In this document: positions 4,842 through 32,100 of the stretch, in pieces
Position numbering within the stretch: the stretch's first letter is position 1
Layout of the letters: each line of letters starts with the position of its first letter
NCBI GenBank assembly: GCA_964304625.1
Contig: OZ199838.1
Coordinates: forward strand, 8,081,550 to 8,145,549
Direction: 5' to 3'
Origin: Kudoa neothunni
Taxonomy: Eukaryota; Animalia; Cnidaria
DNA: 64,000 nucleotides
Program-made: the position numbers and the translations under genes
The notes under the pieces: model-generated
Told to the model about the DNA's origin: nothing
Seen by the model: only the letters and a program-made list of their open reading frames with translations
The model's database searches: none

Positions 4842-7800
4842 CTACAACAAAGGAATCATAAAGGTTTTAAAAACAGAATTCTCGTCATCTGTTTGCTGCC
4901 TTGGGTTTAATTGATGTTCTGGGAGTACATTCCAACAATACGTCAATGCATACAATGAACTGTCATAATCTGGCTCTTTGTAGACTCTCACCTTTTCGAA
5001 GATGCTAAATAATCGTTAAATAATATTATATCTTTAATTAATTAATTAATTTAAATGTATAAGATGTATTATTTTCTTGAATATTGAAATGTTAAAACCT
5101 TTATTTGAAAATATAGAATTTATTAAAAGTGGGAAGTCCATTATACGAATTATTAACATCAAACAATAGAGGATAATGCTAATAAAGTTCTATTTCTCAT
5201 TTAAATGCGAATAAAAATTATATTTAATAACGAATAATCACGTTAAATTAAGAGAAATTATATCGTGTACACATTTATTCACTAGAGCAATATACAGTAT
5301 CAGTATATGTGGATATTTGCACCTTGGAATTTTTATTTTTATATATTTTAGGGGGAACAAGAAATAGAACTATTTATTAATTTATAAAATAGTTACACTT
5401 TTTAAGTTTATTTTATTTAAGGTAAAAAATGCATAATTCGAACGCTAGAGTGTTCCGCTAAACACTTGAATCAAATAAGTAATAGGGATTATTGAATCAT
5501 TTATTCGAAGACATTCAAGAGGATTATCATAATAACGAGAGCAAGTATTGTATAAAAATATAATTACAGTCGTGACTCGACACTGCGTAATTTAAGAAAG
5601 ATAAGCATTATACATTTTAATTAACAAAATTAAACAATTAAATCATATTCGATATGCTTAATAGGATTATTATGAAAAGAAATTATTATTTTGAAGAAGC
5701 GGATATACAATAAAATAGGAAAAACCTTGTGTCTAGCTATTTTGTGTAACTCATTTTCCACATTTTAATCCCTTTAATCCATTGGTTGCAGTATCGTAAA
5801 CATGGTAAGATATCAAAGAACTATAGAAGATCAAATTAAAATAATTGATTACTATAATTATCTTAAGTCTATAGCTGGTGCTAAATCTATGATTGTAAAA
5901 CATTTCGGTTTACCAAGTGATTCTAACCTAAATATTTTTCGGTAATTTAAAATAGGCCATTCTACTCTTGATAGAATCTTTTCAAAACAAGATGAAATTA
6001 CAAATTCAAGTATTGCAATATCTAGAAAAAGATTTAAACCCGGAAAATATGAAAATCTTGAAAATAACCTTTACAACTTGATAGTTTCAATTCGAGATAA
6101 AAATAAACTATTATCTGGGTTAATAATTATCGAAAAGTTTCTGTTATTTCCCAGGATATTAGAATCAACAATTTTAATGTAAGAAGGGATGGTTTAATAA
6201 TTTCAGGGTGCGTTATGGTCTGAAAAGTTATAAATTACACGGAGAAGCTGGAAGTGCCGACTTCAAATGTATTTATGAATGGATGGGCAAGTCGTCCGAG
6301 ATTTTGTCAAGATACAACCCAGAAAACATATTAAATTTGGATGAGACTGGTCTTTATTATGAACAGTTGATACAACGTACATACATTACTAAAAATGAAC
6401 AAAACGTAAAAGGTGTAAAACAATCCAAAAAGCGTGTTACGGTTTTGGTCGCTGTCTTAATGACAGGAGAAAAATTTTCATTACATGTAATAGGAAAATT
6501 TAAGAAACCTCGCTGTTTTAAGGGAATTAAAGAGTTTCCAATTGAGTATCATTCCCAAGCGAATGACTGAATGTCCTCAGAGATGAACCATAATCTCATT
6601 AAAGAAAACAGAAAGGTTTTAATTTTATTGGATCAATGCCCATCTCATCCAAAATCGATCGATAATTTGGAAAACATCGAGCTTCTATTTCTGCCGAAAA
6701 ACATTACCAGTGTGGTGCAACCAATGGATCTGGGAATAATTCATAGTTTAAAATAAAATTATAGAAAACTATTATGCCAAGATATTATATTTGAAGAGGA
6801 TGACCAAGATAGATTTAAATAAACTGTGCTCGATTGTTTAAATACTCTAAAATTGGCTTGGGAAGTGGTTACGGTATCAATTATTGGTAATTGTTTTAAT
6901 AAGTCGCCTATTTTCAAAAGTATATTATCGACTATTTCTATTGAAAAATTAAGATAAGCAAATTTTAATCGAATGCGAGGATGAAATAACATTAGAAGGT
7001 AACATAGAAGAATTTTAAAAATTACATCTAGATGAGGGTGAGCAGTGTAAAGTCACTGTGTGTAGTGAAGATCCTGATTTTGAACAAAAAGATGAATTCG
7101 CCGCAACATCTCAATTAAAAAGTGCAATTAATACATTAAGAAAAGCGTTTATCATCGATAATCCTAAAACCCTGTTTTCTCTGCGTCCAGTTATGGGTGT
7201 TGTACATGAAATTATTAGTAATAGAACCAAAACCCATAAAATTGGTGAGTTCTTTCGTAAGAAACGTTAAAATAGTAAACAGTATGCGTGCGTGGATGTC
7301 TCGATATTGCGTAATTTTTTCCCGGTCCCGAATTGTTACGCAATATCGAAACATTACTGTACTATGAAAAGTTGGGAAATTATTGAATACTTCAACATTT
7401 ATTCTAACCCTGCAAGGCTGTATGTATTATGATTAATTATAGAATGTCGGTACAGTAAACTCTCGACTCAAGTAGCTCAATACTATGTAATTTGCGATTT
7501 TTGAAATTATTATCTAGTAACTTTAAGAAACAGGTTAAACAGTCCATAAAAATGAAATTTTTCAAGTGGGAATCATTAATTGAATTTAACCCTAATGTCG
7601 CCAATAGATTTAATGTTGATATAATTGTCTTTGATGCTTCATAAAATTTTTGTTTGATTTTAGACTCTTATTTACAGAATGCAAAATTCCAAGTCGTGAA
7701 ATGGAAAAATACAATAAATATGCAAATTCAACTTCTTTAACAAAAAGACAACTGTAAAAAACCCTTGGGTTGCATATATGCGAAAATAAATGAATGAAAA

Positions 7801-17071: not shown

Positions 17072-20000
17072 TATGTATATGTTATTTAACTATATGATAG
17101 TAAATTTTATTAATTAGCTCTATGTTCGAATTCTGAAAAATATGGGAATAAAATGGCCGGTCCCGGCTTTTTGGTCCTTTGCTTGTGCTCAGTTGATCAT
17201 GATGGAAAAAGGACTCTAAAGTGGCAAGGTATTTCAGCGTTCAAAGAAGAAATCATGAAACTCTGATACCAATCATTGAGAACCAGGTCCTTAAAGGGTC
17301 AACTATTTACAGTGACGAATTGCCTACTTCCTTCCAATAAATTATCAGAACGAAGCTACAATCACATTCGAATCAACCATTCCCAAGGTTGTTGTATTAA
17401 TAGAGCACATTCGAATACTATCGAATATTGTTGGAGTCGGCTCAAACTTAAGATCCTTAAAATTAAGAGAGGAGTGAGTCGACTAAATTTCGATAGTTAC
17501 TTGCATGAAGAATAGTTCCGATCTATTATGGGTAAGAAACTCAATTTATTTAACAACTATTTGAATATTATTAATAAATATTACCCAACTGAACAAACCG
17601 TCTTATTTTTTTCGCAACACAAACATAATAAATGTCTAAAGTTGATTGGAATAATTTTCTAAATCTAGCATCATAAATATATAGGGATATTAATGATTTT
17701 AAATGAGACGTGTAAAATAAGCCTTTTATAAATGAATACGCTATGAAATAATGAAAGTGTTAAAATTTAATTATAAAAGAATAAACAACATTCAAATCAT
17801 AAACTTTTAAAATATTTTATTAGAATATAAAATTCTATAAGCGCTATATTAACTATTTCGGTTACACCTAAGGTATATTTTTGAGCCGGCTGTGAAACAG
17901 ATATATTATAGCTGACATGATTTTTAACCTTATGCATAAACATAAAACATTTTGAGCAGATAGAAAAAGAATTAGTCACAAGATATAGAAATCATTAGTT
18001 AAAATAAAACATGTTGAGCTCATTTCGTAAAACGCAAAATATTATCTACTATTTGATAGAAAATTATCTACAAACAAATTATAAACTAAAAAAAACAAAT
18101 TTTTTTTTAAAACTTTGTTTTCCCCATTTTGATTCTGTATATTGTCATAATAATTTCCAAAATAAAATGATTCATTTGTAATTAATTAAACCTGCGAATA
18201 AGTAGATCCTACATATTCTAGAAATTATTTGTTAGTAATTAAATAGAATAACCTGACAAAAACATTTCTTTAAATTGGTTAAAACAGGAAAATAATACCT
18301 AAAGTAGTACCGTAAACGAGATTAATGCTACATATAGATGATTATGACAACGAATTTAGGAAACATTAGAAACAGAAAAAATTGATTTATTTTTATATGC
18401 TGCAACTCATTAGAGTGAATGAACTATACCCACGAAAAAATAGACCGAAAAAAGTCACGACATCATTCCGAATTTTGGTAGCCGGTAAGCAAACAAACCA
18501 TTACCTAAATATTAATCTCCTGGAACTATGCTCAATTACCTGATTAGCTCTTGTCTCAACTTTTGTTTGAAGTGATTCAACAGGTTTTCGTGAATACCCT
18601 GATCACTACTAAGAAGTAAATTCATTAATTCTCGAATGCTATTGACCTAGAATTATAGAATTTATTATATGCAAATCAATCAGGAATACTTCCATCGCAT
18701 CTTGCTTGGTGAATTTGAAAGGGAAATATATTTCTACGTCGTTATCGGAAAGTAGGGGTTGGCGAGTTTCACCGTCCAAACCTAGTCCACATATAGCTCC
18801 AGTGATCATTTTTTCGTTGCGATCAATTCTGTATTCGCCGTTTGGAGAGAAAATTAATACGAGCAACTCTCCAAGTCCAACAAAAGGAGGAAACGCAGTG
18901 GAATGTAACACCCTTATGTGATTACTGTTATATTCTGCTGTAATATCGGTGCCAACGTAAGTGTACTGAAGGTTATGTTTGTTATGAAGATAAAGTGATA
19001 CATTGTTCACAGACGAATGATTTATTTTGATAGCTCTAAATTTTATGATTAAATTAAAACTAAATTTTTGTCCAACCTTGATGAAAGTAAATGTGGATGG
19101 AAAGAAAACGAAAGTTCCAACGGGGAGTATGGTCCATTAAACGATTTTTTATAACGATCGTGACTATGGGAAAATACGGATTTTTTACTGTTTTCCATTC
19201 TTCTAGTTAAACATCGCGTGAAGACGTCTATAATTTAAATGACAATCTTCCGCATTACCAAAGCATTCATACTTCTTTTTGATAGCAACAAACACACTAG
19301 GATTGCAATCGAATGATGAAGCAGTAGGTTTTTCAAACTCAATATAACATCTAAAAATGAATGTGAACGCCGTAAACTCATATTTTAAACAATTATAACC
19401 TAGATGCTTCAGTAGTGATTTTCTTGATTTGAGAGAAATCCTTGAAGTATTTTACAACTTGCTGAGCATAGTCGGCCCTGCGATTGACTCCCGTGATCTA
19501 TTACATTAAGTCAATAAAAGATGTCTCAATTTATAATAGTTTCAAAATCTATAAATACCATTTATTCGCATTTATTATTAAGTAATGGCATACAATAATA
19601 GTTTTAAAAAATATCCATAACAATAAGAAAATTGAAATGTTATTTTAAAGATGAATAAAATTGAAAAATAAGATCTATTACATAATATTTAATAGTATTT
19701 AAAAAAATTCGATTGTATTATGTGTCATTATTAGTGTGTTAATCATACCATAACTGAGTTAAAGACATCTTTGTCTTGGTATTGTTTGCAAAAGTCACCA
19801 AAGCGAACAATACCGCTTGTAAAATAGTAAGGATAAAAAGCTCCAGCTAATGCTATCTAATAACACAGAGTTAAACACATCAAACTTTGATTGGTACCTT
19901 TAATAGAAAAACTTCTTTTGGCTTATCTATAATAGGCCTAAAGAATATTGAAAACGTGTTCACACAAGGGAACAATTAAAGAAACCTATTTAACAGTTGT

Positions 20001-23000
20001 GTATGTGGTTTTATTCCCATCTGTTGTAAACGTTTAAATAACTCTCCGATAATGTCATCCGCCTAAAATCAATGTTCCTTAAATGCAACAATAAGCTAAA
20101 ACTACTTCTCTCAATCCTTTCAGAGAAAGAAAGTGGGTTCTAGACCACAGTCTTTTATTCTAGACACAATTTACTACCGTATACTAGGTGCATTTATTTA
20201 ATAATTTACTTCATCAAAATTGGGACTAGCTTGTTGTTTTCTGTATTCCTAATTAGTATAAAAAATGAATGCAAGAAAATTCTACCCGATATATCTCCAA
20301 AAAAAACGATATGATCACTAAAAGATTCATTGGCCCATTGCATACGATTTCTAAAACAACGGAATATGTCAAGATGTATTATGTTTGCCATCGAAGTACA
20401 TATAAACATCCAAATCGTTTCCTGCCTGTTCAGTAAAAATGCTTCTCACTGACATCATTCCAGCTAGAATTAGATAACAACATTAACATTTCCAACTACA
20501 TTCTTGTTATCCAATATCACCAATAACAACAGCTTCATCGAGCAATCCAATTATGTTTGCAAGAAACAAAAACTTTCCTAGTCGCACGTCTATCGGTAAG
20601 TTGCTAAGCACAATTCCAAGGAATGTTAGATCCCCATCAAGGGTTGATACGGAACCATTGAAATTCACTGTCAATGCTCCAATCTCTTTGAGCACTAATA
20701 TCGCCCTTTCCAAATCCACAAAACCAGGAGGAGATATAGCAGCTTGTAGAACTAGAAGAGGAGGCCCAAGTTCTAATTTTTTAACTTTGAGTAGAATTTG
20801 CTCAAGAGGACTTCGCTATAAGACGCAATGTTAACAGAAAGTTGAATTTTCGTGTAAGGATCATTAACCTTCATTTCTGGAGTGTCAAAATCTTCCAAAC
20901 TATCGTAAAATTCTCGACTAACCAATCTAAAACAATAACCCTCAGAAACACGCCCAGCTCGACCTAAAAAATAAATCATTTTACTAAATTAACCAACACA
21001 TCGCCAAAATTCTGCATTTTAAGTTAAAAAATATTGTTTTAAACCAATAGTAGACATACTTGTAGGGGTGCGGGTCGCATTGTTGATTACGCGTTTTTTT
21101 TGTGAATCTAAATACCTGTTGGTGGCTTTTCTAACATTTTTGGTGCAATAAAAAAAATAAGTATATAAATTAATTTGAAAATACTGCCAATTAATAAAGC
21201 TTAATAAGGAATTAAATAGATTTGTTAAATATAGAAATTTTGTGATTGACATATTGTAAGTAATGACTGAAATAATAGGCTATATACTTAATAAACTATG
21301 ATTTTAACTGAAGTTATGAAAATTTAATAATACTTGTTAAGTAAACATGAAATATTTAAACAATGATTCTGATAGAATCATGTTATAGTTATTTTAAACA
21401 TGATATTCAATATAACATATCATACTCTAAAAGAGACCTAAGTTATAAATATAGGTATAATAAAGTTAGCCCAAAAATTACATTTATGATATTTCAGACT
21501 ACACCAAATTTTTTGTAAACTAAATATCACCAGCGCATAGAAGTAATATTCTTAAAACTTATTACGAAATAATTCAATTCTAAAGTATAATATAAATAGT
21601 TTTTAAATTACAAAAATCGTAATTTTTGGTAATTATCAATGTAATATTCATAAATTTTAAGGTTTCGTAAAATGATTTTTCAGAATAAAAATTCTAATCG
21701 ACGAAGTTATCATAAATTATTATTTGTTACCCTTCATTATTTCTTTCAATTTCACTTATTTATATCAATAGATAAAAGAAATATTTATCATAAGGTTTTA
21801 ACTCTGAATTGATTGGTTTTGTTTATTATAATTTTCAAAGTATTTTAAGGCCGTTCATCCTCTATCGTTATCGTTGATTTTCTCATTGAATTCCCCAGGT
21901 CTCATTTGGCGCTGCCGCATCAAGTTATATTCCTTTAATACAGGAACTTATTGGAGACAAAGCCAACAGATTGCTTGCTTTATCCACTGAATATGTCAAG
22001 AAATATTTTTGAGTCCAATCATAATTAAAACTACGATTTTCATCAATAAGTGTACGCTTTCAGGGTGACATTTATGTTTGATTGTACAAACATGTGATGT
22101 CAACAAACGACGATTAATAAGGGAAGTTTTCCCGCATTATCACTTGAGAAAATTAAGAGGATAAATAGAAAACTCTTCCTACATTAAGTTGATAAATTTT
22201 GATACATCTCTATTATAAACATTTATGGTTAAAAATCTAAGGATATCTAAAAAATTATACAAATTACATCGATTCTATGCCTTTTAAATATAGTAATAAA
22301 TAATTTTATCGTTATTGCATTGTTTGTTACGAAAAGTATGGGAATGGTTCCTATCGCGTCAAACCTAATTTATGTGTGAGTATCACATCCCCATATGTTT
22401 TTCTGCTATTTAGTTATTTTTAGATTCTTTTTGTTGTGAATTGAATCTCGTGTACCATTTTTTCTGAAGTTTATGACGTGGTTTTGTTTTGAGGGCGTAT
22501 TAGATCTTACCTCATTCACATTTACATATGATAATCATAGGTACGATGCAAGCATAGGTAAAACATCAAATCAAATAATAAAATCGCGTAAAATTAAAGT
22601 TTACAAATCCATAATATTCATCAAAAGATTGTTTATTTATTTGTTTATGGAAGATAAATGCTGTCTTGGTGTTTCTAGATTTTGAGAACATGTACATGCT
22701 CGCGCAAATTTCAGCCCTCATAAACCCGTCCGCGGGCCTCACTTGTCCAACACTGGTTTAACTATAAGAACAAATTTTCTAGCATTAACTATGTTACAAG
22801 AGCTAGGTAATTATATGTATCATAATTAAAACGTTAATATTTCCTGCATTTATCTTTAGAGACCTCAAATTTCATTAAAAATGTCAATATTTTAGACATT
22901 TTTCTAAATAATGTTGCAAAGATTTATTTTTTAGGGATTTAAGTACGGGGAGAATTTACGTCACAAACTTACGGGTCCCAATTATTATACTTCTAATAAA

Positions 23001-26000
23001 TCTTAGTCAAAAAGAAATTGTTCATAAAATTAAGTACTAAACTGGGTTTTCAACCAGAAAGTTTTTAAGTAAAAGCTAGATAAAGTCACGAATGACAACA
23101 CAAGCATGTATTATAATATAAACGTTGAGCCTAATGAACCAACGCATTCGAGGAGATAGGGTAGAGGTTATGGTCATTTGTAAGAGGGGATGTTAAATGG
23201 ATCCTACTCCTACATTGTCTTAAAGATACGGATATTTAATATTATCCACCAAAACGTCTAAAGCATCTATGGAAGTGAAATGATAAGCCATAACAATACA
23301 ACCTTGTAGGTTGGTGTTCCATAATACTTTTTAACAGTAATCCATATTTTTTAAAAATATCTAGTAATTCACGTAATTATTGAAAATCTATTATCAAAAT
23401 TAAACGCCCAAAATATAAAACTTTGACTAGATCAATGTTACTCGAATCCCAATATTAAGAAAGAATTTTCTATCGGGAGATCAGGAATACACTACACGCA
23501 GGGGTTGACTTTCGTCCAATATTAGCAAAAAATTTTTTGAGTCACCTAAAATCCTCTGTATTCCAATGATGCGAAACAACGTCATAAGCTCAATAAGACT
23601 CAACGGGACACGTCCTTATAAACATAAAAAAGAACATATTTATCTCTTTTTGAAAAACTTTTCCACCACACTTTAGATCCAAGAAACAACTTCCAAATGT
23701 AAAAATTTTAAAAACAAGATCGTTACATTAAGAATTTGGTCTCAATATATAATAATATTTGGATGCAAAATTTATCTAGTAAAGCTCTTTCTGTGATATT
23801 TATGACATTATAATTTATTATATCGTGAAAATAGTCAATCCAAAAGGTTATGTTATGCGATATTAAGTCAAACAATGAAACCAAATATAAAAATTGCAGA
23901 CAAAATCTCAAGCGAAATTTGATAGAAACTACAAAGTTATTCCATAAATAATGTTAATAAAAATATTATTTAAACATAAAGCTATTTATATACAATTCAT
24001 TTTTTAACGACTAAAATTAAATAGTGCATCATTTTTGCACACCAATGCATATACCACTCGTCTTATTTAAATACCCCCACTAGCTTATTTAACCCCCAAG
24101 CGATTTTGTATTCATTATATCTTTTTATTTCATTTATTGAATCTCACAAAATTTTCACTATTCCTGGAACATATAACGATTTATTTTACCAAACAAATTG
24201 GAAAAAACCAATGAAAAGAAAAAATTTTACTTAAATATTATCCTACATTTCGGGGGTAAAACTTATCCCACTTTTTTATTACTTTAAGGTAAAGAGTATC
24301 CTGTAAATAACCAAATAACAAATTATTAGTTATATCAAACGAGTAGATTTGAAGAAAACAATGAACAAAATGACTAGTTGGGCCAATGCGAACGTGCGCA
24401 TAGTGCATAATTCTAAATGAATGAGGCAAGTGATTTCATTGACGAATATACCCCATCTAAAAGCGAATTTGACGATCAAATTATTGATGAAAAAGATATA
24501 TCGGACGAAGAAATAAATCCCATATATATTAATGATAATAATTAAAACCCTCATACGATAATGCATTACAATGCAACCAAAGGTGCGGTTGATAATATGT
24601 ATAGAATATTGGCATCGACTTCTAACCAGAAGTTTAAAAGATGACCGCTTATCGTCTTTTCACATGATTGGTATCTCGTTTATTAATGCATTTGCATTAT
24701 TCAATGACATGTTTAATTCAGAGAAAACATTAAGGAGAAACTTGCTGAAAGAGATTCCTGAAGAATTGTGCAATTCACTGTAAACAGAATCTCCAAAAAA
24801 ATTTAAGCAAATCTGATATTCGAATAACGAACCAGGTTTAAGTAAAAAAATCGTCACGCTGGAATTATTATTAAAGATCTAATGATAAGAGAGACTCTAA
24901 ATGGTTTCATAATTGTTGTAAGTTTTATTTCTCCACTCATGCTTCGAAATTCTTTTAAAGTGTCAAAATTAATTATTGTGCTTATTTTAGTTATTTTTAA
25001 TGAGTTTTCTATTAGCCGATAACGTTACTTTTATTTTGTAAACACTTATGGAGAACGTCTATATATCCCGATAATGTCATAATCAAGATTAGTTTGAGAT
25101 TATTTGGTGTAATTAATACAATATTCCAATGATTCTACTCGTTTAAATTAAACAATATTTTGTATTCCCCAGTAAATTATTTTTTTACACACATCGGAAC
25201 AATAAAAAAGTGGGGCAATTTTTACCTCAAAGGTGTTACAGGGGAGTACCGTTTTTGAGATCGTTAGAGAGTAAACAATTCTAATCAATTCACTTATTCC
25301 CAACAAGAAAGAAGACTGTTTAATTACTCTTTCAACGTACCGCATTTATCCGTAAATATTTATAGAATCGGCGAGGTTGTTTGCGCAAGATAAACAAAGA
25401 TTTAGTTCTTTTTCGAAGATGAATTGTATGCGATAAAAATCACGGAGTACACCAAATCTTTAGGGAAAATAATGCGTTAAACCCCAATAATATAACAAAT
25501 TTCTTTGAAAAAAATAAAAAGTTTTGAAATTAGACACTCAAAATCGACGTTAGTCGGAAACCACCACATTTGTACTATAACAAGGATAAAAAATTCCTAT
25601 TTCGTGTTAAATTGATTAATTTTATTATTTATGAATTAAAACATCAAAGTTGAAATTGTTCTTATATTTTAGTCAAAACTGCTAAACTTGGCAATAGGGT
25701 AGAAAAAAGTTGACACGTACCTTGTCTTTGAGAGCCAGAAGATTTGGATATCCAATTCAATTTCAAACAGGAAAGTCCAATCGTTCTATCGCATTCAATC
25801 TGTTTATGAAGGCAGGTGTCAATAACTAAATTGTATACAATGGAATATTTTTAACTATAACAAATACCATATTTGATATCTGGAACTGTTATGGAACTTT
25901 CGGCAACATTAGTGGAGAAAATAATCTTCGATAATGTTTAAATAGCACAATATCACTAAAAAGTACTTTTCTCCATCCGGAATCACATTTTCTAAATATT

Positions 26001-27570
26001 TGAGCTTGATCATCCGCCGATATTTGAGAATGAAGGGAACGAATAACAAGCCTTTGACGTAAGAATAAATAATCGCCTTAAACACCTAAAAAATACTGTT
26101 TGGTTTTGTTCTCAGAATGCAATCTTTCATGTAATGCTTCCACTTCGGGAATTCCAGGTAAAAATACTAAAATAGACGAACGATTCTTGTCGCAATCAAT
26201 CTGATGAGATTTTTCAAATGTATCAATATTAAGAATAATGCTGATGATGAGGGCTTTCATTTGTTCAGAAAAATTAGGTTTTGATGTGCTAACATAGTCG
26301 TTCTAAATGTCCATGTTAGAAGAATCAGTCCGAATTTTTTAATAGCATGTAACTTGTGGTGTATTATTCAGAAACGTAAATTCGCCATCATGAAATGTCG
26401 TCACATTGTAAACACGACCTTGGACATTGATCACAGGTGGTTGCATGACCGAACTTCCAATTCTTGTTGCAAAATAATTTGCGAACAAAGTAACATCGAG
26501 TGTAGCTGACATTAGAATAACCTACAATTGCATACATTATCAAAGTATTTAGGGCGAACGTAAATTTTGAGACGGATTCTCAAATTTACTTTAATATTTT
26601 TGGACTTTTCTTTCATATAACGACTCAATACTAGTAGCAATATGTCAATTTCAACAGTGCGCTCATGTATCTAATTAACCACAGGATCGAATAGAGATTC
26701 CATGCGAAAAATTACCTCGTCAACAATTACATGGGTGTAACAATCAAGCACATCGACTGAATGGGCAATTCTTTCGATAAGTACACCAGTCGTCACGTAA
26801 CATATGCGTGTATCGACACTTGTGTTTTTGTTGTGAGCAACACTGTATCCAACCATCTGTCCAATCGGCCAATTTCTCTCAGCACATACTCGTCTAGCGA
26901 CAGACATGGCTGCTATTCTTCTTGGTTGTGTCACAACAATATTGCAGTGTTCATCTTTTTCACGGTGATAATCTAGGATGTACTGAGGTATTTGGGTGGT
27001 TTTGCCACTTCCAGTAGACCCTAAATTCAAATTATATCACCATTATTATTGTTATTATCCTTAATGGATTACCACACACAATAGTTACAGGACTAGTCTC
27101 TATGGTATTGGTGATGGTTTGGTGCGATTGAAATATAGGCAAGCTTTTATCGTAGCTGTGCTCGAATCCGTATCGATTATACACTTCGGTAGTATACTCG
27201 ATGCCTTTTTCTAAGATATCTTTGTTAAGAAGACCATCTTCCGGATTGTAAAAACAAGAGTGAACACTCCTCTCTTTTACTTGATGGTTATAGGTTTCTT
27301 GTCTAATAAGAATAACTTTAAGAGAAGTTGACATTCATTACATTTTCTCAATTTTTTTCTCTTGTTCTTTATGAATTAACCGTGCTTTGTTTTCTTCCGC
27401 AGCCGCCAAAATGGCGCTATTCATTTTTTTTACAGTTTACAAAATTGTAAACAAAAATATTACTTTTCTTCTTTAGATTTCGATTTAATGGTGTCGTCTT
27501 TTTTATTTAATGGCTGTTCAAATTCAGACGGAAAGAAAAAACTTAAAACTCGTTTGTCCTCCTCGTTCAT
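4842..27570 (-). CDS. TDRD9: TDRD9/spindle-E-like DExH RNA helicase (piRNA pathway), ~25 exons, roughly 1070 aa, apparently without a Tudor domain
   Basis: ATG at 27570. Helicase motifs: GSTGSGKTTQIPQYILD, VVTQPRRIAA, DE|IHER, ILMSAT, VFLPG, STNVAESSITVPDI, QRQG|RAGR. TDRD9-specific blocks: DGDLTFLGIVLSNLPIDVRLGK, LAGAFYPYYF, GPYSPLEL, LIFSP..EYRID....ITGAICGLG, DVEIYF. The last exon (5004-4842, IFEKVR..YCWNVLP..L*) joins the donor at 18539 in phase 2 (QELI-S-IFEK). Confidence 0.9.
5567..7359 (+). mobile_element. Tigger/pogo transposon with decayed transposase, inside the TDRD9 intron
   Basis: TA-CAGTCGTGACTCGACACTGCGTAA at left pairs with TTACGCAATATCGAAACATTACTG-TA at right. ORFs carry LHGEAGS, NLDETGLYY, LLDQCPSH and QPMDLGII. 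Confidence 0.9.
8381..11424 (+). mobile_element. piggyBac transposon with decayed transposase, inside the TDRD9 intron
   Basis: Flanked by TTAA (8377-80 and 11425-28). The palindromic subterminal motif GGGGTGCATTATGCACCCC occurs at both ends. ORF fragments carry IDDRMVGFRGKCPF, IDNFFTS, YNQTKGGVD, RRWP and a C-terminal Cys-rich domain. Confidence 0.92.
11892..11953. repeat. 62-nt near-perfect hairpin
   Basis: CTATATTTAACTATTTCTG (11892-11910) is the exact reverse complement of 11935-11953. After one mismatch the stem extends by CTC/GAG around a 16-nt loop. Confidence 0.9.
12510..15662 (-). mobile_element. hAT-like relic that contains the Tigger at 13156
   Basis: Inverted termini CAGCGTTACCAACC and GGTAGGCAACGCTG with subterminal TCGGACAA repeats. 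ORF 12677-12904 has the hAT dimerisation motif NASSERAFSLLK. The 8-bp TSD is not preserved. Confidence 0.65.
13156..15215 (+). mobile_element. Tigger/pogo transposon (decayed, intron-containing transposase)
   Basis: TA-CAGTGCAACATCGCCCGTGCGTAA pairs with TTACGTACGAGCGATGCTGCACTG-TA. ORF 14032-14523 has GEKLPP, WMT, FIDNFPAY and QPLDQGII. A 41-bp intron lies at 13971-14011. Confidence 0.92.
15958..18505 (+). mobile_element. Merlin (IS1016/ISXO2-like) DNA transposon, decayed
   Basis: Perfect 8-bp TSD TAAATATT (15950-57 and 18506-13). The ~55-bp TIRs share TACCGGCTACCAAAATT..G.ATGATGTCGTGACTTTTTTCG. Transposase motifs: GGEGYVIETDESLLHCKRK (~16807-16865) and HSNTIEYCWSRLK. Confidence 0.9.
17039..17080. 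repeat. (AT)n microsatellite inside the Merlin element
   Basis: The AT dinucleotide run is read directly from the sequence. Confidence 0.95.
21045..22755 (-). mobile_element. Internally deleted Charlie/SPIN-type hAT element in the second large TDRD9 intron
   Basis: The terminus CAGTGTTGGACAAGTGAGGCCCGCGG (- strand at 22755) and both flanks match the MITE at 40506-41231 in reverse orientation. It keeps a GTF2IRD2/SPIN-like N-terminal remnant, KRTLIDENRSFNYDWTQKYF (~22060-22000). Confidence 0.75.
24230..24960 (+). mobile_element. Old piggyBac transposase remnant
   Basis: HYNATKGAVDNM at ~24563-24600 and MIGISFINAFALF downstream. The ends could not be resolved. Confidence 0.55.
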
Positions 27571-29137
27571 TTTTAAACCCCTCGCGCAAACCCGCATGAC
27601 GTGTTGAAGATTAACTATTTAAAAAGACACAATTGTTATTTTCATCATATTATCCAGAGCTAAAAACTCAAACATAATTAAAATACCTGTAAGATTAATT
27701 TTGGACTTTAAATCTATTTGCGATAATAGTAAAGGAGACGGCTACTTGGTTTTAACCTCTAAACTTCACCTATTTTCGCCGATTCTTTTGCGATAACTTT
27801 TTTACAATTATAGATGTTGGGCAAGATCATTTAATTCTCCAAACATTTAATTATAAATTTTAAGAAACATCCGGATTAATCCTCTAGTTGTGTTACTTAA
27901 GTCTATATCAGTGCTTCCCCATTCATTTTAGTTTCGGGACACCCTACTACTTATGAGGACAACTCCACACCCCTTCTCAAAAAAGAGATATAACATGGAT
28001 TTATGTTTAGGCGGGGAAAATATTTTTATTACAATAACATTAAAAAGAAAAAACCGTCTATTTTAACATGAAAACAAATGTGAATGAAATAAATAAAACA
28101 GACAATAAATTAAATGTTTATGATATTTTTCTTGTCCTTTTTGAAGAATAATGGGGTCAAAATGGGAATCTTTATCAGATGAAGTTATGACTAAATCATA
28201 ATTCGTAAAGGTACAAGATATGTTGATGTTTTAGTGCAAAATAACGGACGTGAATAGTTGAGCTTCCGCGAAATTTTGGATTACGTAGTTTTGTTGTTTC
28301 ATTAGAAATTTAAAAATTTAATGAGGAAATTAAATATGTGACCCAATTTCGAATGCATAGTTTTAATTTATAAGCTTTTTGAGTGCAAACTGACTTTTAT
28401 TTAAAGTATAAAAATTTTAAATAATTTAACAACAAAATCTAAATAACGTAACCATGACACTAATTAAAATTTAATTCTTACTTGCAATGTAATTTAACTA
28501 AAAATAATAAATAATATAATTTTTAATAATTCATCCATTTTAAAACTTTTTATATGTCGTTTATCTTTCCCTTTAAAACGTAAGACCAGCTTACAGCACA
28601 TGTGTCCATCGTTCGCAATATTTCGTCTTCATTCGGTATATGAGCGTTGGCTATTCCGAAAAACGCGGAATTTTGATTTTTAGGCAATTGATAGAATCGC
28701 AATTTTAGATTATGGCTATTTTCGTGATAACCAACAATATATAATTAATTTTTGTAGAAAATTTAGATCGTATAAGTCTAAATCGATCATGTAATTGCGA
28801 TGGTAAATTAAAATTGATATCTCGAAGCGATATAAATGACAAATATCAATTAAAATGCAATCATTGAAAAAAACGGATGCCTATAAGATACGGAACAATT
28901 TTAGAACTCTCAAAACTTCCTTTATGGAAGTTATTTCTGTCGGTAGTTATAGTTCTTCAACATCCAACCACGACTTATGGAGATTTAGCGAGTCATTCGG
29001 ACATTTATTCATATACTACGATTTCCGAATGAAAAACAATAGTCAAGGACATCACTTTTTTAATGTTGAATGAAGGGTTTTCCAAAATTGGTGGGAACGG
29101 TGTTGTTATTCAAATAGACGAAATTGCCATATGTAAA

Positions 29138-32100
29138 TGTTAAGAGTGCTGATAAAAGAGACTATATTTCAAACAAACGCACTACTATCGATAACTAACT
29201 GGTCGTTGTTGCCGCGCGTGCGCCACACACATAACACCTCTCCCGCCTTTAATGAGGAGTCCCATGCTTTTGGCGGTCTTCTAATTCTTGTGCTTCTTCT
29301 AAGAGCCTGTTCGGATTCCACATTATTTGGAGGTGAAGGGTTATCGTTTATCACCTTTTCGGTCTCTACGGGTTGCCTTTTATTAATGTCCATTGTCCAA
29401 TAGAGTTCTCTGTTTTCCCCGTCGGTAGAGAACGGAATGCCCATCTTCGACCCTCTCAATTGGTCAACATGCTTCTTTACCACACCACCAATATCCAACA
29501 TTACCAAGTAATTCACATGACCAACTTTCTTAATTATTTCACCATTCTCCCATTTACATCCTCCCGATTTCTTGAAATTTTGAGCCAATACTCTATCATG
29601 TATTTCGAATGTTCTAGTACCGTTAATCGGACTATTTTCAAAGACTTCACTATTCGTGGTCTCTGATAGTCTTGTCCATAAATTGTGTGGTTTATAAGAC
29701 AATAATTTGGACACTGGTAACTCATTTGTTGTAGAGTGAGGAGTGTTTCTATACACCATCAAAAATTGGTTTAGGTTCTTTTCCAAATCATCTTCTCTGC
29801 TTTCATGTAATGCCTTTTTTAGTGTTTGTACAAATCTTTCTACTTGGCCGTTACTTGACGGGTGATACGGCGCTATTCTCACATGACGGATTCCATTACT
29901 TATCACGAAGCGATCAAATTCCTTGGAGATAAATTGTGGACCATTATCCGAAACGATAGTTTTCGCCAAACCAAATCTCGCCATCACTTCTCTCAACTTC
30001 TCCACAGTACGTTTACCGCAGAAGCTTTCATCGATAAACACTTCCGGCCACTTCGAATATGCATCAACGACTATGAACAACATTTTTCCCTTGAAGGGCC
30101 CGGCAAAATCTATATGAATTCGCTCCATCGGCCTTTGAGGTGGAAGCCATGGGTGGTCCGGCGCTTTCTTTGGTTTGTTTAATTTTTGTGTCATGCAGTA
30201 ATTACAATTTTTGATGAAGTCATTGATGTCGTTGTCGACAGTGGGCCACCAAACATATAGTCTGGCCAAAGCCTTGGTTTTTTCGACTCCCAGGTGGGAT
30301 ACGTGTAGCATTTTTAACACCTTCCTTTGTAATCCTTTAGGTATTATCATTCTCTCCCTATAGTAGAGTCTCTCGTCGTGAATTGAGATATGATCAAGCT
30401 TTGGCAGGTAAAACTGAATCAATTGTTTATTGTTTCCACATTCAAGCACGCTTCGGTCCTTTAGGACTCTTTTCAACGTGACCATTTCAGTTTCTTCCCC
30501 CATTAACCTTTCAAGCTCTGAGATAGGTATCAAAAAATTTTCCGACACATCTATAAAGTCAATATCGGCGTCCATTTCTCCAAAGTTTGCTGATTCCATA
30601 TTCGTGGATGGCAGCCGCGATAGGCCATCAGCTATAACGTTAACACTTCCCTTCTTGTATACAATTTCGTAATCAAATCCAGTAAGATAAATTTTCCATC
30701 GGATTCTTCTTGGCGATGTGTCATTAATACCTTTCACACTATCAAACATATAAACCAACGGCTTGTGGTCTGTAAAAATTTTGAAGTGCTTTCCTTCTAG
30801 ATATTGTTGAAATTTCTTGACGCAATACACCAAGGCCAAACCTTCTTTATCTACTGCAGAATAATTTTTTCCATTCTTAGTCAATGTTCTAGAGGCGTAC
30901 GCTATTGGTATATCATATCCACGCTCATCCTTATGTGCCAAGTAGCCTCCAATTCCATTATTCGAAGCGTCCGATGTGACAACGAGTGGCAGATCTGGAT
31001 TGAAATGGCCTAACATTCTCTTATTAGTAATAAGACGTTTAGCTTCTTCAAATGTTTTTGTATGTAACGTTTGCCAATTCCATTGTCTGTTCTTTTGCAG
31101 CATTTCAGTTAGAGGATAAATTACCTCAGCCATTTTTGGGCAAAATCTTCTATAGTAATTGAATAGGCCACATATTGAACGGAGTTGGGATATATTGGTA
31201 GGTTTAGGAGCATCTAATATCGCCGAAATTTTTGATTTCGAATGGGTGAACCCCTCTTTAGTTATCACCACTCCGCAATATTCTATTTCTTTTCTGAAAA
31301 AGGTGCACTTATCTCTGTTTGCTTTTAAGCCATGTTTTCGAATCAATCGTAGGACAATATCCAAATTTCTCAAATACTCTTTATCGTTCTTTCCTGTGAC
31401 GATAATGTCATCTAGATAGCATTTAATTCCAGGCAATGATCCAAATATGTGATCCATCGCTTTTTGCCATAGAGCCGGAGCGGAATTTATCCCAAACGAT
31501 AATCTCTTGAATCTTTTAAGGCCCGCATGTGTGTTAACTGTAAACAAATCTAGAAATTTATCATCAATCAGCATTTGATTGTAGGCTTTTTCAAGATCAA
31601 TTGTCGAGAATTTTTCTCCACCACACAAGGATGCCAGAATTTCCTCTATTCGAGGTAGTGGATACTCATACTTCTCTATAGCGCCATTCACTGCCACCGA
31701 ATAGTCCCCACAAATGCGTAGCTTTCCTGATTTCTTCACAACCGGAACTATTGGTGATTCCCATTTACTATATTGCACCGATTCAATAATTCCTTCCTCT
31801 TCCAATTTCAGGAGTTCTTCTTCCACCATCTTTTTCTTGAATAGCGATAATGGACGTGGTTTGCAAAATTTAGGGATAACATTGGGTTTCACTTCAAATT
31901 CAGCTTTGTAATCCTTTAAACATCCCAAACTTCCATTAAAAATATCGCGATAATTGTTTAATAGCTCCTCTAAATTTGAGTACGCTCTATTCGCAACGTT
32001 TGTTGTAGTTTCGTCTTGCCACTGTAATTGAATTGATTTGATATTTTTAGGTGCTACTGAGTGATCTTGAACGATTAGTAATACTTCCGTTGGTGGCCAT

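Follow-up and report, generated by a model that had tools for sequence, protein, structure and literature searches.

Can a TDRD9/Spindle-E helicase lose the extended Tudor (eTudor) domain that its orthologues carry and otherwise remain whole? This question is raised by a gene on the minus strand of a 64,000-nucleotide stretch of the Kudoa neothunni genome (GenBank assembly GCA_964304625.1, contig OZ199838.1, positions 8,081,550 to 8,145,549). We refer to this whole stretch as the window, and unlabelled coordinates are positions within it. A first-pass annotation had proposed that the gene is spliced across a 31-bp intron from the block preceding the Tudor domain directly into the C-terminal domain, and had taken this as a sign of a rewired PIWI-interacting RNA (piRNA) pathway. 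In our analysis of the genomic DNA, the eTudor is absent in frame at the level of the assembly, and the gene is a TDRD9 orthologue by descent but not a Tudor-domain protein by architecture. Taken as a whole, the evidence makes it likely that this is the sole TDRD9 orthologue of the genome, that the predicted helicase works on PIWI-bound transcripts via Tudor-independent surfaces, and that its loss of the eTudor was an independent event.

The missing extended Tudor

An orthologue profile of 1,429 positions was built from 44 full-length TDRD9/Spindle-E matches and run against every open stretch of the minus strand, and then against both strands of the whole window. The exons keep the order of the profile, with positions 104-834 corresponding to 27205-19272 and positions 1129-1315 to 19174-18542. 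Profile positions 835-1128 have no match anywhere in the window on either strand, including the 4.75-kb intron and the 13.5-kb downstream stretch. With the flanks in order and the segment between them unmatched, the description of the event as a clean in-frame loss is upheld. The Tudor family model (PF00567), which the first-pass annotation had named as a check, has no match in any exon, nor in the window in six frames. The missing segment comprises 294 profile positions, or about 290 residues in relatives, close to the roughly 300 residues that the first-pass annotation gave for the interval; here, a linker of approximately 22 residues runs across the 31-nt intron. All of the seven nearest full-length matches combine DEAD, Helicase_C, and TUDOR domains, with PF00567 located at about 830-1019.

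The missing segment was modelled from one orthologue with a 41-sequence alignment, at a predicted local distance difference test (pLDDT) score of 85. The model folds as a canonical eTudor; the structures that it matches best are those of TDRD1 TD3 with a dimethyl-arginine MILI peptide, of the TDRD2 eTudor, and of Spindle-E (9NHS). The pattern AP[YF]...[YF]YRA...VF[FY][VI]D[YF]GN is kept in most Tudor-bearing orthologues. We take this pattern to be the methyl-arginine cage, by comparison with the SND1 cage residues F740, Y746, Y763, Y766, and N768. Both this fold and the aromatic cage kept by most orthologues make it probable that the domain truly read methyl-arginine in the ancestor, in line with the role that the first-pass annotation gave to the fold. 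The profile scan also found no match in the window to a C-terminal CCHH zinc finger. This finger is variable across the family, its pattern occurring at profile 1399-1421 in 23 of the 44 orthologues, and its absence therefore carries little weight.

The 31-nt junction

The 3' end of exon C (19350-19259) reads ...VFVAIKKKYECF plus one base, and exon D (19227-19077) resumes with D-VFTRCLTRRMENSKKSVFSHSHDRYKKSFNGPYSPLEL... on the other side of a phase 1 intron of 31 nt (GTAATG...TTATAG, 19228-19258, minus strand). By direct reading, the coordinates and the spliced translation proposed earlier are exact, and the junction splice as predicted from the genomic sequence is confirmed. An intron is needed at this point because the unspliced frame reaches a stop 19 codons on and the conserved C-terminal block (E 7e-26) sits in another frame. 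Eighteen GT..AG pairs keep the frame, among which the 31-nt pair has the best donor; the span yields at most 84 residues for any of them, and 79 with the 31-nt choice. Whichever pair is used, the residues aligned to profile 834 and 1129 are separated by 97 nt. An eTudor of about 290 residues thus cannot be hidden by splicing, in agreement with the earlier argument that the intron is too small to conceal exons. The 31-nt intron is the shortest of the gene, yet it is not out of character: the other short introns measure about 36-57 nt, and three longer ones about 148, 251, and 4757 nt.

A simple intron-to-intron deletion was considered as the origin of the loss and is not supported. The Nematostella introns fall at profile positions 834 (phase 2), 1096, and 1138 (both phase 0), whereas the junction intron is in phase 1 and lies approximately 4 codons past the Nematostella 834 position.

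Family membership and copy number

A search of 1.84 billion representative proteins with the helicase exon (query 26713-27018, minus strand) gave best matches of 57-65% identity, with full-length forms of 1,285-1,510 aa; the named ones are TDRD9/Spindle-E of horseshoe crab, spider, and scallop. At the other end of the protein, the fold model of exon E (pLDDT 79.8) has a single significant match in the PDB, residues 1169-1282 of Spindle-E in 9NHS, the cryo-EM structure of the SIWI-piRNA-target-GTSF1-Maelstrom-Spindle-E complex (Foldseek E 8e-4; VIA Z 4.4, root-mean-square deviation 4.6 Å over 106 residues). This C-terminal fold and the exon-by-exon profile matches bear out the statement that the helicase, the HA2 region, and the TDRD9-specific C-terminus are all retained. 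A TDRD9 helicase query has 51-59% identity to the window gene versus at most 42% to the other DEAH loci of the assembly. A tree was calculated from one exon (102 columns). Although poorly resolved within the TDRD9 group, it places the window gene inside that group and splits off the DEAH loci of the same genome by a branch with a Shimodaira–Hasegawa-like approximate likelihood ratio test (SH-aLRT) value of 98; a position outside the TDRD9 clade had been named as a possible refutation. Furthermore, the phase-2 intron after profile 803 (49 nt, 19351-19399) has a counterpart of the same position and phase in Nematostella TDRD9 (L024:12721-13200), and the intron positions at about 769 and 1277 likewise coincide with those of Nematostella. 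By its best hits, its C-terminal domain, the single-exon tree, and the intron shared with Nematostella, the gene is a TDRD9/Spindle-E orthologue by descent.

Canonical TDRD9/Spindle-E proteins (Bombyx, 9NHS; Nematostella) show the same order of DExH core, HA2 and oligonucleotide-binding (OB) regions, and C-terminal domain. Their helicase exons are 51-65% identical to those of the window gene, and at least one of their introns has the same position and phase as in that gene; the canonical proteins, however, have the eTudor of profile 835-1128. About half of them resemble the window gene in having no detected CCHH finger. Drosophila Spindle-E consists of a helicase core, an eTudor, and a zinc finger (PMC12526068), whereas the window gene has neither the eTudor nor a detectable zinc finger. 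DHX36, DHX29, and MLE/DHX9 are like the window gene in their DExH core, their HA2/OB regions, and their lack of a Tudor, but they do not have the TDRD9-specific C-terminal domain that the window gene possesses.

The assembly comprises 40.26 Mb in 4 contigs, with the locus inside a 17-Mb contig, and the genome searches scored the best candidates exon by exon. The TDRD9 C-terminal block occurs once in the assembly. Three probes, namely a TDRD9-type eTudor, the C-terminal block, and the helicase core, revealed no second TDRD9 locus in it, and the search for a second, Tudor-containing paralogue that the first-pass annotation had suggested accordingly returned none. Fission into a helicase and a stand-alone TDRD9-type Tudor was also considered; the assembly gave only a weak match, to a TDRD1-like open reading frame (ORF) 0.5 Mb away, and this possibility was rejected. 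The gene is apparently the sole TDRD9/Spindle-E orthologue of the assembly.

Tudor-less relatives in other lineages

Several proteins among the first 150 matches break at the same profile positions, and three were verified in DNA. The tardigrade Paramacrobiotus has 81 nt between profile 792-838 and 1129-1196, and the ant Wasmannia has 66 nt between profile 506-865 and 1127-1279. The third is an intronless TDRD9-family ORF of 1,489 aa without a Tudor, on contig Ga0484946_005625 of JGI metagenome 3300044994 (L016:702-5171; source label 'HrpA-like RNA helicase'), which matches profile 43-850 and, 189 nt further on, 1129-1405. The uniqueness that the first-pass annotation implied is contradicted by the same loss in eutardigrades, in ants, and in this metagenomic eukaryote, and the locus is one more instance of a loss that recurs, not an isolated event.

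The eutardigrade proteins share the architecture of the window gene, leaving the profile at 838 and re-entering it at 1129-1130. All three of those listed, from Paramacrobiotus (XP_055337489), Ramazzottius (RvY_09360), and Hypsibius, are without PF00567 and measure 953-995 aa. No Tudor-bearing tardigrade TDRD9 copy is present among the matches listed, and the Tudor-less form is apparently the only TDRD9 form there, as in the genome of the window. The eutardigrade protein is nevertheless not specially related to the window gene: in the exon comparisons, it either fails to appear or comes no higher than 96th, and it stands elsewhere on the tree. In ants, a Tudor-less Spindle-E/TDRD9 paralogue (e.g., Wasmannia XP_011696838) is found in at least 17 genera, with 1,188-1,210 aa in the full-length forms. 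Like the window gene, it keeps the helicase and the C-terminal domain but has no eTudor, the break lying at profile about 865/1127. The ant paralogue differs in retaining the C-terminal tail and in coexisting with a Tudor-bearing protein, since each listed ant genus also has a canonical Spindle-E of about 1,400 aa, whereas the assembly of the window gene yielded no second copy. The Tudor-less ant paralogue is annotated under the same names as the canonical copy, and no discussion of it was found in the literature searched.

Five exons of the window gene were compared one by one. For four of them, the three Tudor-less proteins came far behind Tudor-bearing ones; the exception is a 66-aa exon, for which the ant protein takes 4th place. 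The three stand at three separate places on the single-exon tree. A single clade of Tudor-less TDRD9 proteins that includes the window gene is not supported by these rankings or by the tree, evidence that is suggestive and of low resolution. Because the window gene is not specially close to the other Tudor-less forms, independent loss is the simplest reading. No published description of a Tudor-less TDRD9 was found in the literature searched. The novelty of the locus is modest, as the same architecture is already present, apparently unremarked, in tardigrade and ant annotations.

Partners of the piRNA pathway in the same genome

Two PIWI-clade loci were found in the assembly. One is an ORF of 889 aa with PAZ and Piwi domains (L013:2791-5457; contig C3, about 4,676,290-4,678,956), which matches PIWIL1-type proteins best, at about 1e-180 versus about 1e-50 for the AGO clade, with identities of at most 40%. 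Its first 90 aa are dense in RG/RGG and contain 12 RG and 6 GR. PRMT5 was also found, so that both of these checks suggested by the first-pass annotation gave a positive result. The PIWI ORF has no introns, whereas the TDRD9 gene has at least 20 exons with tiny introns.

PF00567 matches three loci in the assembly, a lower bound given the exon-by-exon six-frame search of 40 Mb. One of them is an intronless TDRD1-like ORF of 752 aa with a zf-MYND domain and three Tudors (L008:40-2295, minus strand; contig C1, about 8.65 Mb), situated 0.5 Mb from the window, and its first Tudor carries the full aromatic-cage pattern. Further partners in the assembly are one LOTUS locus, one Maelstrom, and two GTSF1-type double-finger loci. 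Judged by these predicted genes, the arginine-methylation/Tudor axis seems intact apart from the helicase, which alone appears to have lost its own reader. A 'rewired' piRNA pathway is therefore more than the data show, the RG-rich PIWI, PRMT5, and the TDRD1-like protein with MYND and three Tudors all being present.

Gene model and neighbouring sequence

The window is AT-rich (about 30% GC), and its minus strand carries one multi-exon TDRD9/Spindle-E gene, from about 27,300-27,600 down to 18,536. Ordered exon matches to the orthologue profile, with which tblastn agrees, define at least 20 exons within 18536-27334. The 5' end is left as a range, with candidate first exons up to about 27,600, and the stop codon is the TAA at 18538-18536, provided that the gene does not end in a distal exon.

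The helicase exon at 26716-27020 (profile 149-250, E 3.7e-58) contains motif I (GSGKT), motifs Ia and Ib, and the start of the DExH box; it matches Pfam DEAD and has 57-65% identity to TDRD9/Spn-E proteins. The DExH box itself is split between DE and IH by a 45-nt intron. Six more helicase-core exons follow at 25719-26670 (profile 250-486, per-exon E 1e-6 to 1e-13), and their translations reveal SAT, TNVAESSITVPD, and the first half of motif VI (QRQG). A large intron of about 4.75 kb (20965-25718; frame-keeping GT..AG candidates of 4724-4763 nt) splits motif VI between QRQG and RAGR. Of the two exons at 20519-20964, one completes RecA2 (GRAGR...; profile 486-519, E 6e-12) and the other encodes the HA2 winged-helix/ratchet region (profile 519-617, E 9e-37, with a weak Pfam HA2_N match). 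Helicase motifs I-VI are thus all intact (GSGKT, DE/IH, SAT, TNVAESSITVPD, QRQG/RAGR).

Exon A (19749-19856; profile 733-769, E 1.6e-7) begins the OB-like region (IALAGAFYPYYF...). Exon B (19400-19497) matches profile 778-803 weakly and is followed by the 49-nt phase-2 intron at 19399-19351. Exon C (19259-19350), delimited by direct reading with a weak match to profile 798-834, encodes the final block before the missing segment (CYIEFEKP...KKKYECF). Exon D (19077-19227) opens with an unaligned basic linker of about 18 residues and continues into the start of the C-terminal domain (NGPYSPLEL...), where profile 1129-1152 aligns at 19174-19103; it is also matched by tblastn of orthologue residues about 1123-1138. 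A 41-nt intron (19076-19036) separates it from exon E (18690-19035; profile 1158-1277, E 7e-26), the core of the TDRD9-specific C-terminal domain. After a further intron of 43 nt, exon F (18536-18646; profile 1277-1315, weak, direct reading) runs to the TAA at 18538-18536. Within it, AG/GTAATT at 18540/18539 is an alternative donor candidate. A putative distal last exon at 4866-5004 (minus strand; profile 1314-1357, E 7.6) could be reached from this donor through a 13.5-kb intron (18539-5005): in the whole-window scan, a weak tail match at 4866-5012 extends the exon order and is phase-compatible with the donor. This exon near 5005 is an unproven candidate, the match being non-significant alone.

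Approximately 1.5-2 kb upstream of the 5' end of the TDRD9 gene lies a Ty3/gypsy-type element. Its pol ORF of 943 aa (29172-32000, minus strand) contains RVT_1, RT_RNaseH, Integrase_H2C2, and rve, and the frame is still open at 32000, the upper limit of the scan.

A helicase without its own reader

The mechanism that we favour would retain the biochemical task of TDRD9 and change only how the protein is positioned. The Tudor-less TDRD9 would still be an ATP-driven RNA helicase acting on PIWI-bound transcripts, brought into place by surfaces that need no Tudor of its own. One candidate route is a contact of a short TDRD5/Tejas motif with the helicase core. In flies, the SRS/SIR motif of Tejas binds residues 334-393 of the Spn-E helicase core and brings Spn-E to the nuage (PMC10412688, PMC12526068). 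A second candidate route would be incorporation into a complex of GTSF1, Maelstrom, and PIWI engaged on its target. In silkworm, SIWI engaged on its target is joined by Spindle-E together with GTSF1 and Maelstrom (PDB 9NHS; De et al. 2025, as cited in PMC13523842). The methylated arginines of PIWI may be read instead by separate multi-Tudor scaffolds, such as the TDRD1-like protein. With losses that are likely independent, the eTudor would then be a module that TDRD9 can shed while the rest is retained.

Several considerations weigh against this interpretation. That the gene acts in the piRNA pathway is an assumption based on orthology. Alignment to the profile is weak (E 0.1-1.7) for the exons on either side of the junction, and the single-copy claim extends to the 4-contig, 40-Mb assembly only. 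The independence of the loss from those in tardigrades, the ant paralogue, and the metagenomic ORF is likely but not proven, because the single-exon tree is poorly resolved. Finally, the eTudor is ordered and modelled in 9NHS, and it may therefore matter for the SIWI-GTSF1-Maelstrom-Spn-E complex. The idea that it is disordered in that structure, and hence dispensable for docking, was rejected, as the eTudor model matches chain G (E 1e-14, 215 columns). The papers searched that cite De et al. 2025 (9NHS) gave no detail on the eTudor.

The situation might alternatively resemble that of ants, with a Tudor-less paralogue at this locus and a canonical TDRD9 in sequence outside the assembly. Ants do carry both forms side by side, and the genome search scored only the best candidates. 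We nevertheless regard this as unlikely, given that none of the three probes located a second locus, that eutardigrades too show only Tudor-less forms among the matches listed, and that the exons of the window gene are closest to canonical TDRD9s and not to a divergent paralogue. It is similarly improbable that the helicase has left the piRNA pathway for another RNA process, such as a nuclear or a general messenger ribonucleoprotein role. Fly Spn-E is intrinsically nuclear unless recruited by Tejas (PMC10412688), which would suit such a role, as would the CCHH finger that about half of the orthologues have and that is undetected here. Against it, the family-specific C-terminal domain and every helicase motif are kept, the expected partners (PIWI, GTSF1-type fingers, Maelstrom, LOTUS, and TDRD1-like) are present, and the Ty3/gypsy-type element with a long open pol in the window implies that transposon control may still be needed. 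Least probable of all is an artefact or a dead gene, whether a mis-assembly that dropped the Tudor exons or an untranscribed pseudogene with a seemingly intact frame: the junction intron is indeed the shortest of the gene, but the natural Tudor-less genes of three other lineages are interrupted at these same domain boundaries, at least 20 exons are open with all catalytic motifs present, the linker and the start of the C-terminal domain lie in one exon of a locus inside a 17-Mb contig, and a random assembly collapse is unlikely to cut out precisely one domain, keep the frame, and still provide a good GT..AG intron.

Implications

The persistence of an RG-rich PIWI, PRMT5, and a multi-Tudor scaffold suggests that the helicase need not itself read methyl-arginine. 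More broadly, and only tentatively, the eTudor of TDRD9 may be a detachable module that is repeatedly shed at the same boundaries, with lineages that have a Tudor-less TDRD9 as their sole copy carrying out PIWI-guided silencing without methyl-arginine reading by the helicase. If this is true, Tudor-less genomes are natural separation-of-function experiments for the TDRD9 eTudor. There is also a consequence for gene inventories. TDRD9/Spindle-E, a helicase of the piRNA pathway that silences transposons, takes its name from the Tudor domain. A 2025 survey of Tudor genes defines them by domain presence (PMC12147562), and surveys of piRNA factors defined by that domain would score the genome of the window, as well as tardigrades, as lacking TDRD9. 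The locus alone is a solid, modest addition, and the more interesting point is the recurrence at identical boundaries; together with the tardigrade and ant genes, it offers a natural test case for the contribution of the TDRD9 Tudor.

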